A stretch of DNA of 38,627 bases from Octopus bimaculoides (GCF_001194135.2 NC_068995.1:55840522-55879148); one strand, 5' to 3'. Positions 14,777-36,414 are shown, counted from the first letter of the stretch. The notes: generated from the sequence alone by a model not told the origin. Program-made: numbers and translations.

Positions 14777-14899
14777 TCAACCGGTTTTGTTCCACGTACG
14801 ATTTGCGCTATTCGAACACATGCACAAAGACAACTTAGTTTCAGCCGAATCTCGGAACTGTACCATCAATATGAAATACGTCACTAACATCCCGGCAAC
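14777..14899 (-). CDS. GRL gene A, exon 4 (terminal, TM7b with TYxxxxxQF motif)
   Basis: Acceptor ttgtttctatcttttcag|. Reads [49 protein letters not shown] is an exact match to the GR/GRL signature. Confidence 0.92.
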
Positions 14900-15103
14900 C
14901 TGAAAAGATAGAAACAATTGTAGTAGAAAGAGTAAGCATGGGTCAGAGTGGTCAAATGGTCAAAGGGTCAAATGGTCAAGAAGATCATGGTTTCGAATTC
15001 AATACCACTTGGTCAGTGGCTCGGACAAGTGTCTTCTATTCCACTATAACCCCAGGACGGCTAATGTCTCTTGAGTGAACTTAGTGGACAGAAACTGTGT
15101 AGA

Positions 15104-15228
15104 AGGTGGCGAGCTGGCAGAATCGTTAGCACGCCGGGCGAAATGCTTAGCGGTATTTCGTTTGCCGTTACGTTCTGAGTTCAAATTCCGCCGAGGTCGA
15201 CTTTGCCTTTCATCCTTTCGGGGTCGAA
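15104..15228 (+). mobile_element. SINE family A 5' half, fused directly after a family-B fragment (about 14975-15103)
   Basis: ggtggcgagctggcagaatcgttagcacgccgggcgaaatgcttagcgg ... gtcgactttgcctttcatcctttcggggtcga. Confidence 0.8.
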
Positions 15229-15669
15229 ATGGAAAACAAAACAAACAACATACAGAACGACCCTTCATCAGTTGTTGGCTGTTTTTCTAGTCTAGTATTT
15301 CGAGCATTCAACAGCAGATATATATATATATATGGAGCGAACATGACACAATGAAGTAGAGAAATTTGAAAAGACAACACGAAACCGGTTATTTCTCAAA
15401 ATACAATGTTTATNNNNNNNNNNTATATATATATATATTTGTTTATGTGTATATGGGTAAGTATATATATATCTATGTATATAGATATGTGTGCATATAC
15501 AGTATATTATATATACTCGCACTTATAAAACCGTTAATTTTTTTTTTCCAGTTGCTATAACGACTTTCAGTTTAGAGTGTTGGATTTATTTATATCGACA
15601 TAAATATCACATTAATTAGTAACTCATGACTTATTTTCAATTTGTAAATTATTCAATGGCCGGATTGCT

Positions 15670-16006
15670 ATTACCATTATCACAATCATCATCATCAACA
15701 CCACCACCACCACCACCACCATCATAATCCTCATCGTCGTCGTCGTCGTCGTCGTCATCGTCATCATCATCATCATCATCATCATCATCAATACAATTAT
15801 TATTATTATTATTACTACTATTATTGGGATCGATAAATTAAGTACCAGTTGAACACTCATCACCATCCCCCAAAATTACTGTCCCTGTGGCAAAATTTAA
15901 AATCATCATCATCATCATCATCATCATCATCATCATCATCATCATCATCATTATCATTATTATTATTATTATTATTATTATTATTATTATTATTATTATT
16001 ATTATT
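15670..16006. repeat. Compound triplet microsatellite (CAT/CAC/CGT/TAT)n interrupted by a SINE-A fragment
   Basis: Direct reading of the sequence. Confidence 0.9.
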
Positions 16007-16220
16007 AAAGGCGGTGAGCTGGCAGAATCGTTAGCGCGCTGGACGAAATGCTGAGCGGTATTTCGCCCGTCGCTACCTTCTGAGTTCAAATTCTGCCGAG
16101 GCCGACTTTGCCTTTCATCCTTTCGGGGTCGAAAAATTAAGTACCAGTTACGCACTGGGATTGATGAAATTGACTCATCCCCTCCCCCCCAAAATTGCTG
16201 CCATTGTGGCAAAATTTGAA
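16007..16220 (+). mobile_element. tRNA-derived SINE, family A (near full-length copy)
   Basis: ggcggtgagctggcagaatcgttagc ... ctgagttcaaattctgccgag(g/t)cgactttgcctttcatcctttcggggtcga...aagtaccagt ... caaaatttgaa, flanked by (TAT)n. Homologous copies seen at about 3943-4097(+), 5781-5920(+), 6865-6983(-), 9890-10008(-), 10060-10240(+), 15104-15228(+), 15826-15901(+), 17163-17376(-), 18340-18445(-), 31824-31948(+) and 36494-36707(-). Confidence 0.85.
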
Positions 16221-33977: not shown

Positions 33978-34143
33978 AGTCGGGCATGGGCGACCTTTTT
34001 CGGGAAGCAAGCAGCATGAGACATGATTCATCGAATGGCGGGCCGCACAGCTAAAAACATCGAAGGTAAATTTTAGTTAGCACTGCCACCCAGAACGTCT
34101 GGCGGGCCGCAGTTTGGCCCCACATCTCATCCCACCCCCGACT
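33978..34143. mobile_element. Probable hAT-type MITE relic
   Basis: Imperfect terminal inverted repeats agtcgggcatggg ... cccacccccgact (11/13), with internal gggcgaccttttt and ggcgggccgcagtttg motifs typical of hAT/Charlie-like termini. No clean 8-bp TSD. Confidence 0.45.
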
Positions 34144-34372
34144 GCTTTAAACTACTAATAATAAAGAATTTGGAACTGGAGTATGGTGACTTTTAATATG
34201 TGCCTAGAAGAGAAGCTGTTCCTCACACAAACACACACACTCACACACATATGCAAACACACACACTCACACACATCCACAATGAGACATAATATTCAAA
34301 TTTACTTTAGATCTGTGTGTGTGTGAATATCGTTTCGCCAACTCATTCACAAATTCCTTTCTCGTTCTTCAG

Positions 34373-34441
34373 GCGCACAAGTTACTTCCTCATTTATATA
34401 AGATCCGATACAGCGAACACACAGAACATTTCGGGATGGAG
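34373..34441 (+). CDS. GRL gene B, exon 2 (23 aa)
   Basis: Acceptor ttcctttctcgttcttcag|, donor gag|gtatag, phase 0/0. Reads AHKLLPHLYKIRYSEHTEHFGME; 69 nt like GRL-A exon 2. Confidence 0.85.
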
Positions 34442-36324
34442 GTATAGTTGTTACCTTTTTTAAATTTTATTTATTATTGAGAGTCTACAGAGTCAATCGA
34501 TTTGCTAAAAATAGCAGCCAATGACCCTCGCACAATTTAAATAAGAAAATGATACATTAGCAATACTGTATTAACGCATAGGCACACAGAGTAGTTGCCC
34601 CCCACCCCGGGGAGGATGTCTCACGGGCCTAGAGATCCTATGTGTGCCGTACCGTGCTGTCAATAAATGAATAAATATTATAGGGCCCAGTGCATTATAG
34701 GGTCGAGCGCTTCCTGATCTCACTGACCGGTCTTCTTTACGTTTCTCTGTCCTTCAGCAACTGTCGCACATCTACTCGACAGGGTCGTCAACGATTAAAT
34801 GCATTCCGATGGGAAACATTCTGTCACTTGTTTTGCAGTGTTTCTAGGATCACTTTATATAATGTATCAATCCCTTCTTAAGATGATAAAGTATGCTTTG
34901 AGGGAGATTCGGTTGGTATTTGCAGCAAATCAAGCAGTCATATAGAAGCATTTTCTTCGGCACAGCCATGAAAGCTTATTAGAAATAGTAAATTCTTATT
35001 ATATATCCACAGAGACTATTCAAAGTATGTTTTTTTTTACAATTTTATTAGAACGGAGAAACAAAGATTTGCGACGTTCATATTTTTCTGTAACGTTTTC
35101 GTTTCATAAATAAGTTTCTCAGCTGGAATCGTGACATGACTAAAAATTCGGATTACTGGAAGCGACAAACATTGAAAGTCCAATTTAATATTGATTTCTA
35201 ATATGAACTAAAGATCAAAGCTCTTTCGGGGAAATGGAGAACAAGGCTGCATGACAATCATGCCTTTCTCAGCAGCATTATCACTACAGTGAACCAGTGA
35301 ATATTCCATAAGAAACCTACAATGCTATTGTTCGCAATAGGCCTGACATGAAATAATTTAAATAAATAAGAGAAAACGTTTCCAAAGAGATATCAAAACC
35401 GACATGCTTATCTCAGCAAATCGCAGAAGGCGTAGCATAGACTCTACGGCCATCGTACAAATTGGCAAAACCTCAAGAAAATGAAATGAGATTGAAAATC
35501 GCTTTCAAAATTTGGTTATGATGTCTTTCTTTTGAAGTTAACTGTTTGAAACATCGCAGACTTTTCATTCTGCAAGAAAAGATTTTATTCTCAAGGTTAG
35601 ATTAGTGAGAAAGGTTAATAAAATTGAAGGTCTGATTTCAATTCTTGCTGGTCGCTACCCAGAGGAAAACAGGAACGGGAGAAGGAGTTCCGAATGGATG
35701 CAGTTCGAACATGGAAATAACGGTTGAGAGGAGATACGCCCGACATGTTGAACACAAGAACAATAACATCTTCTCTTTCACTCGCTTCTGTTCTCAGGAC
35801 GAATAACGAAACGGGAGTAACACAGTGTGCCTGTCCAAAAGTATGAAGGTCACCTATTATTTTATGTATCCCAGTGTCGCCAGCGTGCTAAAAGGGACAT
35901 TTTTGGTAAGGATTTTTAAGGTTATAAAAGCCACACGTGAAACGTTGAAAGCGTCAGAGAGAGAGAGAGAGAGGGGGAGAGGGAGAGAGAAAGAGAAAAG
36001 GAAAGAAAAAGGGAGAGAGAGAAAGGGTGAGAGAGAGAGAGAGAGAGAGAGAGAGAGAGATCTAATAAGGCCAAAATGTTGGATTGGGAAAAGCGACAAA
36101 GCATCGCTCAAACTGTTTTACCTTTACATTAATTTTCTCCGACGAAATCCAGAAGAGCCAAATCCATTCTGAGGTCAATAAAATAGCAAATAAGTAAAAA
36201 CTCATAAATAAAAAGCGATTAAATATATTACACGACATTTCTCATCTAAAACCTTCTTCTTCATCCTGAGTCGACGGATCCAGGCCTTCATCTTTATAAA
36301 TTTCCTCTCATTTACTTTTTACAG

Positions 36325-36414
36325 ATGCTGCTTTTGTTAAGTAAACTGAACGGGCAGCAGGTCGGCTTGACAGTTCTACATTTATTTGTGGTCAGTTGGA
36401 GAACGATCCTTAAA
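36325..36414 (+). CDS. GRL gene B, exon 3 (30 aa)
   Basis: Acceptor catttactttttacag|, donor aaa|gtaagt, phase 0/0. Reads MLLLLSKLNGQQVGLTVLHLFVVSWRTILK; 90 nt like GRL-A exon 3, with shared L.G...GLT....V....T.L. Confidence 0.9.

Follow-up and report, generated by a model that had tools for sequence, protein, structure and literature searches.

The window analysed here is a stretch of 38,627 bases from the genome of Octopus bimaculoides (36.5% G+C, ten runs of N), and its main content is a pair of genes of the gustatory receptor-like (GRL) family, gene A on the minus strand and gene B on the plus strand, which point away from each other. A stop-to-stop scan of the window gave one outstanding open frame, a plus-strand frame of 370 codons at 30084-31193. 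On comparing this frame with the window by tblastn, a minus-strand frame at 22273-21449 was found to be 20% identical to it (E 8e-12); it was missed by the scan because it crosses an (ATT)n microsatellite and runs on into the assembly gap at 21099-21267. The first exons of A and B, with 348 and 358 codons, respectively, are by far the longest non-repetitive frames, and the remaining frames seldom exceed 100-160 codons. For exons 2-4, every open in-phase exon bounded by AG and GT was enumerated, and exactly one convincing candidate was obtained for each missing exon. Gene A is complete, with four exons encoding 441 amino acids, and gene B has three exons within the window, which encode 411 amino acids and end on a GTAAGT donor. 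All introns are in phase 0, have AG/GT boundaries and occupy homologous positions in the two genes, and the two proteins are 20% identical over 384 amino acids (E 4e-22). The ATG codons lie 7,702 bp apart (22409-30110) in divergent orientation, a distance that is approximate, as 1,493 of these bases are N. The original prediction, made from the sequence of the window, had described a minus-strand gene of 441 amino acids and a plus-strand gene of at least 411 amino acids, diverging across 7.7 kb; an independent rebuilding of the exons agreed with this description exactly, down to the end coordinate.

Exon 1 of gene A (22408-21365, minus strand) starts with the ATG at 22408, encodes residues 1-348 with transmembrane segments TM1-TM6, and ends at the donor GAG/GTCAGT. 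It is the same as exon 1 of the UniProt entry A0A0L8FSD6, and the open reading frame (ORF) of an orthologue from another assembly, P0006, terminates at the same donor position. Exon 2 (20262-20194, minus strand) encodes the 23 residues IRDLLPILHRLHLDDNMKEQELE; it is flanked by a TTTCAG acceptor and a GTGAGA donor in phase 0 and was the best splice-bounded in-phase candidate of intron 1. Exon 3 (17827-17738, minus strand; 30 residues, LLMFVNQLSGPDIGLTACDIIVITRQTLLT) was found as the unique strong open exon between AG and GTAAGT, and is also present in two annotated Octopus proteins, P0003 and P0004, described below. The last exon (14899-14777, minus strand) encodes 40 residues followed by a TGA stop codon (14779-14777) and contains TM7 and a predicted extracellular tail with the glycosylation sequons NRT and NKT. 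In a tblastn search, 33 of the 47 TM7 queries taken from relatives matched this exon, and a motif scan placed the TM7 signature TYFILMVQF, an instance of the family motif TYhhhhhQF, at residues 408-416 (14855-14881, minus strand). The introns thus fall after residues 348, 371 and 401, and the last exon begins six residues ahead of the signature.

Gene B begins with an ATG at 30111, and its first exon (30111-31184, plus strand; residues 1-358) ends at the donor TCT/GTAAGT and is 38% identical to the ORFs P0001 and P0002 from two other assemblies. Exon 2 (34373-34441, plus strand) encodes the 23 residues AHKLLPHLYKIRYSEHTEHFGME between the acceptor TTCTTCAG and a GTATAG donor, in phase 0; it has the same length as exon 2 of gene A and aligns with it (LLP.L...E). 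Exon 3 (36325-36414, plus strand) encodes the 30 residues MLLLLSKLNGQQVGLTVLHLFVVSWRTILK and is matched by the equivalent segment of P0099 at E 9e-4. The internal exons of 69 and 90 nucleotides are therefore equal in length in the two genes and mutually alignable, and gene B shares with gene A the positions of its first two introns and of the donor of the third. A TM7 exon of gene B was not found on the plus strand at 36415-38627 by motif, by reading of the three frames or by tblastn with the 47 TM7 peptides. Because exon 3 ends at a GTAAGT donor, this exon is placed beyond the window, as is expected when the last intron of gene A itself measures 2.8 kb.

The sequence between the two genes (22409-30110) consists mostly of microsatellites, and no gene was found in it; all 1,493 N of this spacer lie in two gaps, at 23392-24028 and 24969-25824. 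Further gaps are located in intron 1 of gene A (21099-21267, 98 nucleotides past the donor), in intron 3 of gene A (15414-15423) and in intron 1 of gene B (32474-32483 and 33091-33884), and none lies within or abuts any exon of A or B. Long CA, TA and ATT microsatellites flank most of the assembly gaps. The exons on either side of each gap have the correct order, strand and phase, and both proteins are collinear with the full-length GRLs of the limpet Lottia gigantea and the clam Mactra antiquata, with no block missing at any junction. This collinearity, the match of gene A to positions 2-367 of the 370 positions of the Pfam profile 7tm_7, and the order, strand and phase of the exons around the gaps all speak against a mis-joined scaffold and against a coding exon hidden in a gap, and the latter was rejected.

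Gene A is represented by two Octopus proteins in a collection of 5.8 billion proteins that includes UniRef and NCBI nr. The first, P0003 (UniProt A0A0L8FSD6, 413 amino acids, O. bimaculoides), is labelled "Gustatory receptor" and matches gene A residue for residue wherever the two overlap, apart from its alternative last two residues. Hence, the window belongs to O. bimaculoides, and the assignment of the sequence to a cephalopod genome in the original prediction was right. This entry agrees with gene A in the donor of exon 1 and in the exon 3/4 junction, lacks the 23 residues of exon 2 and has another C-terminal end (...SANPT). The second, P0004, is a RefSeq model of O. vulgaris named 'gustatory receptor for sugar taste 61a-like', in which exons 2-3-4 are spliced exactly as in gene A, with 97% identity and an identical C-terminus. 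Since exon 2 is present in P0004 and is needed for collinearity with the Lottia and Mactra GRLs, it is taken from these sequence comparisons to be real, and the 441-residue model, as the version that is collinear with its relatives, corrects the UniProt model.

At its other end, P0004 begins with a peptide encoded by an orthologous 22-nucleotide repeat and joins it to exons 2-4 of gene A, skipping exon 1. In the window, the corresponding 22-nucleotide minisatellite is present in 6.5 copies at 27155-27298 on the minus strand (ORF 27096-27335), 4.7 kb upstream of the ATG of gene A, and reads as repeats of CPIHPTKMSYTSDKDVLYIRQR. The start of P0004 is either an artefact of annotation by Gnomon or an upstream 5' exon or alternative promoter that would bring the start of transcription of gene A nearer to gene B.

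Four features have been published as marks of GRs and GRLs, namely an inverted seven-transmembrane (7TM) topology, C-terminal phase-0 introns, the 7tm_7 domain and the motif TYhhhhhQF (as listed in a passage of PMC5203786 citing Robertson 2015), and all four are found in gene A. Its spliced protein matches Pfam 7tm_7 at 29.5 bits, with a cut-off of 26.6. It has exactly three C-terminal introns, all in phase 0, the last of which lies just before TM7, and its TYhhhhhQF motif recurs in dozens of relatives. Seven hydrophobic segments or helices are visible both in the sequence and in the structural model. Across 41 relatives, the loops on the N-terminal side carry a mean of 19.7 Lys and Arg residues and those on the other side 3.7; on account of this strong positive-inside bias, the N-terminus is predicted to be cytoplasmic and the C-terminus extracellular, as computed from sequence.

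Word-indexed searches for homologues were sparse, returning two, two and three proteins, and the family became visible only by exhaustive HMMER search. In such a search of 1.84 billion representative sequences, the A/B profile found 464 relatives at E of 1e-3 or below and 130 at E of 1e-10 or below; the named ones include the Lottia "Gustatory receptor" V4AUT3, a "Trehalose receptor" of Mactra, and proteins of Owenia and Saccoglossus. Of the 41 relatives that were aligned, 39 match 7tm_7. Spliced models are required for the Pfam match, as the first exons of A and B alone give none to 7tm_7. For gene B, which lacks TM7 within the window, the match is to Trehalose_recp of the same clan (21.4 bits, cut-off 21). 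It had been proposed that both genes belong to the GR/GRL channel family and that both spliced proteins be compared with 7tm_7. The proposed family holds on domain, relatives, introns, TM7 motif, topology and fold together; the comparison with 7tm_7 itself came out positive for A and negative for B, which by itself stays below the cut-off. The orthologues of B, P0001 and P0002, match 7tm_7 at 34.6 and 35.9 bits and also touch 7tm_6, for which gene A falls below the threshold.

It could be supposed that gene A alone works as a receptor and that its duplicate, gene B, is decaying or silent, as a pseudogene or an unexpressed relic. Such a gene would be in keeping with the absence of any counterpart of B among the Octopus proteins of the 5.8-billion collection, where A has two, with the lack of a TM7 exon within 2.2 kb downstream of exon 3, and with the failure of B alone to reach the 7tm_7 cut-off. 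Against this stand 411 open codons out of 411, canonical splice sites in phase 0 where the family usually has them, and the orthologous first exons, which are open in the assemblies of P0001 (396 amino acids) and P0002 (372 amino acids); a dead gene would not remain open at 64% A+T. From the length of the last intron of A, a TM7 exon just outside the window is to be expected. Moreover, annotation pipelines commonly miss chemoreceptor genes with low, cell-restricted expression. A dead or silent gene B is hence considered highly improbable. Besides the two 38%-identical ORFs in other assemblies, no match to B was obtained in the collection, and gene B appears to be unannotated.

The structure of gene A was modelled with AlphaFold2 from an alignment of 41 sequences, with a predicted local distance difference test score (pLDDT) of 86.8 and a predicted template modelling score (pTM) of 0.85. 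An earlier model from four sequences was weak (pLDDT 60) and still matched insect odorant receptor (OR), GR and Orco structures only. When the better model, that of the A monomer, was compared with the PDB using Foldseek, as the original prediction had advised, the top 23 matches were all insect Gr64a, Gr43a, BmGr9, OR or Orco structures, with TM-scores of 0.59-0.75 and E-values down to 1.9e-8; beyond these 23, the TM-scores were below 0.2. The fold comparison covers gene A, the model of which has the fold of the insect OR/GR seven-transmembrane ion channels (7TMICs). A sequence-profile search of the PDB gave no match; it is thus Pfam and the fold, and not pairwise similarity, that tie the octopus proteins to the insect channels.

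Among the insect GRs, the structures of Drosophila Gr64a (8jme, 8ze0) and Gr43a (8jm9, 8x82) and of Bombyx Gr9 (8uvt, 8vc1) resemble the model of A over about 400 columns with a match probability of 1.00. They also share with A the 7tm_7 domain, the TYhhhhhQF motif, the N-in topology and the C-terminal phase-0 introns. In contrast, their sequences are 12-17% identical to those of the octopus, which in addition has a Cys-rich tail with glycosylation sequons after TM7. The insect ORs and Orco (6c70, 7lic, 8v00, 8z9a) share the 7TMIC fold with A as well, at TM-scores of 0.59-0.74. The ORs are an insect-specific offshoot of the GRs (PMC7746228), and nothing at the octopus locus points to a universal co-receptor of the Orco type.

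Two other identities were considered and rejected. For a class A G-protein-coupled receptor (GPCR), no 7tm_1 match was found, GPCR structures appeared at the level of Foldseek noise (TM-score 0.10-0.16, E>1), and the charge bias indicates the opposite topology. For a Cys-loop receptor, neither A nor B gave a Neur_chan match in Pfam at E of 10 or below, and there was no Cys-loop structure among the listed fold matches of A. The chemotactile receptors (CRs) of cephalopods are, like A and B, candidate ionotropic chemoreceptors (PMC11526382), but the two groups are unrelated; CRs are pentameric Cys-loop proteins derived from nicotinic acetylcholine receptors, their ligand-binding domain is large and extracellular, and they have four transmembrane segments, whereas A and B have seven.

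The best relatives that carry a name are GRLs of other lophotrochozoans. Gene A is 28% identical (145 bits) to the Lottia gigantea protein V4AUT3 (XP_009051427.1), and gene B is 26% identical (122 bits) to the Mactra antiquata protein KAL4225658.1. The proteins agree in length, in collinearity across the junctions and in the sequence TYF..L.QF followed by a tail with Cys-x-Cys and N-x-S/T, although the sequences have diverged greatly (20-28% identity). The short tail after TYF....QF, which in A comprises residues 418-441, reads CHCNSTSS in Lottia and CQCNVTG in Mactra, and N-x-S/T sequons follow TM7 in 15 of 27 relatives. From these alignments, the Cys-x-Cys pair with its sequons is a putative conserved extracellular feature of many lophotrochozoan GRLs of this clade.

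The resemblance to Lottia extends to the gene order. On the plus strand of the window, a small gene with a PDZ domain converges on gene A. Its exon at 8045-8194, within the interval 8015-8200 assigned to the gene, scores 41.3 bits against Pfam PDZ and is 72% identical (E 4e-20) to a PDZ gene of Lottia; the probable last coding exon of the same gene (10787-10828, plus strand, IRPKGPLKFSPWKH) is 79% identical to the open segment closest to the 3' end of the Lottia gene. In Lottia, this PDZ-domain gene lies 2.5 kb downstream of the GRL (P0005, that is V4AUT3), again in convergent orientation. The tail-to-tail arrangement of GRL and PDZ gene is thus conserved from cephalopod to gastropod. Since gene A has the same PDZ arrangement as in Lottia, it is the positional orthologue of the limpet GRL and the copy at the ancestral position. 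A second GRL was not found within 10 kb upstream of the Lottia GRL, in contrast to the octopus and a second species, which have two divergent copies. The simplest reading is that B was probably produced by a local duplication in inverted orientation in the cephalopod lineage.

The second species is represented by an 81-kb contig (ENA ERZ21867824:ctg104916l) that carries an orthologue of each gene. P0006 (37299-38351, plus strand) is orthologous to A, with 33.7% identity (E 9e-59), the same "MPK" start and the same end of exon 1, and P0002 (11559-10441, minus strand) is orthologous to B, with 38% identity; the cross-comparisons between A and B types are much weaker. P0002 and P0006 are head-to-head, 25.7 kb apart. 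Because both orthologues have this arrangement, the duplication and the divergent order predate the split between Octopus and the ERZ21867824 species, and the pair is old, as had been proposed. The contig has 35-36% G+C and no octopus repeats in common with the window, and its source is probably another, distant cephalopod. Exons 2-4 were not found within 10 kb downstream of the orthologues in the sequences L001 and L002, where the introns are probably longer. In a neighbour-joining analysis, A grouped with P0006 in 97.5% and B with P0002 in 99% of bootstrap replicates, and the six sequences including those of Lottia and Mactra formed a clade in 88%.

Taken together, the locus is likely to consist of two old GRL paralogues of the insect OR/GR 7TM ion-channel superfamily, which by default would act as independent receptors. 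One ancestral molluscan GRL beside a PDZ gene would have become gene A, and an inverted duplication, probably in the cephalopod stem, would have given rise to gene B, after which both copies diverged fast. By homology with the insect channels, each protein may contribute one subunit to a tetrameric cation channel that is ligand-gated and non-selective; the N-terminus would be cytoplasmic, TM7b would line the pore, and every subunit would have a ligand pocket within its transmembrane bundle. The Gln-Phe conserved in TYFILMVQF would be situated at the gate, a position taken from the structures of BmGr9 and Gr43a. A and B would then work as homomers or with unspecified partners, and their adjacency would reflect local duplication and not an operon-like functional unit.

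Several points weigh against this account. Channel function, tetrameric state and ligand gating are carried over from insect homologues that are 12-17% identical. Gene B, with no TM7 exon in the window and no Octopus protein match, could be unexpressed or truncated, and the divergent arrangement kept in the second species could reflect shared regulation. When the duplication took place is poorly resolved, as the A and B pairs are sisters in 57% of replicates, while A stands with Lottia alone in 42%, and an older duplication followed by loss in Lottia is possible.

The question of shared regulation leads to a proposal that takes up an idea of the original prediction, in which A and B are co-regulated from a common upstream region, are co-expressed in the same cells and form an obligate heteromer of a tuning subunit and its partner, as OR/Orco and Gr21a/Gr63a do. 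The head-to-head order persists in a species with proteins only 34-38% identical to those of the octopus, the two genes have remained intact ever since they duplicated, and heteromers are known among insect GRs and ORs, one of which, the OR5-Orco structure 8z9a, is among the fold matches of A. On the other hand, the start codons are 7.7 kb apart in one species and 25.7 kb in the other, far over the usual distance for a bidirectional promoter, and a comparison of the octopus spacer with the flanks of the orthologues in the other species gave microsatellite matches only, with no conserved non-coding element. With this spacing and without a conserved block, the region between A and B bears little resemblance to a classical bidirectional promoter. 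Adjacency is also the default product of local duplication, and Gr43a, BmGr9 and Gr64a, the closest relatives with solved structures, work as homotetramers. Clusters of other GRLs are seen as well. On L003, a Logan contig of 5,749 nucleotides from SRR29346471, the GRL first-exon ORFs P0009 and P0010 stand in tandem at 2123-3343 and 4548-5639, both on the plus strand and 1.2 kb apart; because of this tandem, it is clear that GRL paralogues also cluster on the same strand. An obligate functional pair is therefore considered unlikely. Less probable again is the extended form of the proposal, a conserved two-subunit module of cephalopods that would be co-expressed from the shared spacer in sucker or olfactory sensory cells and would form a heteromeric GRL channel, a second ionotropic chemosensory system beside the CRs.

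A different reservation concerns function rather than partnership. A and B may have been placed in the right family and still have a developmental or internal role, as is reported for the cnidarian NvecGrl1, in which case the chemosensory reading would be wrong. Data on the function of non-insect GRLs are very sparse, and developmental cases are among the few that are known (Saina et al. 2015, as cited in passages of PMC7746228 and PMC5203786). The subfamily also seems to have kept few members and a stable position, with the GRL-PDZ order maintained from Lottia to Octopus, rather than to have expanded massively; such a pattern suits a conserved developmental or housekeeping role better than one in environmental tuning. 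The fast evolution of the genes, with 34-38% identity between two species, is however typical of chemoreceptors. A developmental role is regarded as possible, if somewhat unlikely, and independent receptors derived from an old local duplication remain the preferred description of the pair.

Apart from these genes, the window contains a short interspersed repeat in many copies on both strands, one frame of which reads ...RPRKDERQSRPRRNLNSE...; it occurs in the introns and flanks of A and B, for example at 15047-15287, 15841-16221, 17201-17551, 9915-10235, 31794-32060 and 36543-36707. Some of the other open frames were examined and set aside as genes. The minus-strand frame at 37303-38022 (240 codons) is of low complexity and rich in Ser, His and Asp, its best Pfam match being SR-25 at 16.7 bits against a cut-off of 40, and it is probably an artefact of trinucleotide repeats. 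The plus-strand frame at 18792-19265 (158 codons), in intron 2 of gene A, has no Pfam match and may be what is left of a mobile element, and for the plus-strand frames at 26671-27150, 27249-27653 and 5916-6413 Pfam gave nothing credible.

The occurrence of GRLs in molluscs is established (Robertson 2015, cited in a passage of PMC7746228); published work on cephalopod chemoreception centres on the Cys-loop CRs, class A GPCRs and ionotropic receptors (IRs) (PMC11682238, PMC11886862, PMC11526382). In the literature searched, no paper analysing cephalopod GRLs was found, and the reviews name CRs, GPCRs and IRs only. The novelty claimed in the original prediction was nevertheless overrated, as A and B are ordinary members of a known family, mollusc GRLs have been recognized before, and gene A is already annotated both in UniProt (A0A0L8FSD6) and in the RefSeq set of O. 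vulgaris. What is new is modest and consists of the unannotated paralogue B, the corrected model of A and two conserved gene-order relationships. The locus supplies a full-length octopus GRL that, with exon 2 restored, is collinear with its relatives, and a second, apparently unannotated GRL. The head-to-head order of A and B and the tail-to-tail order of A and the PDZ gene date the pair and provide a positional orthologue in gastropods. No new kind of protein or mechanism is involved, and the A/B pair offers an easy entry to the function of GRLs outside the arthropods.

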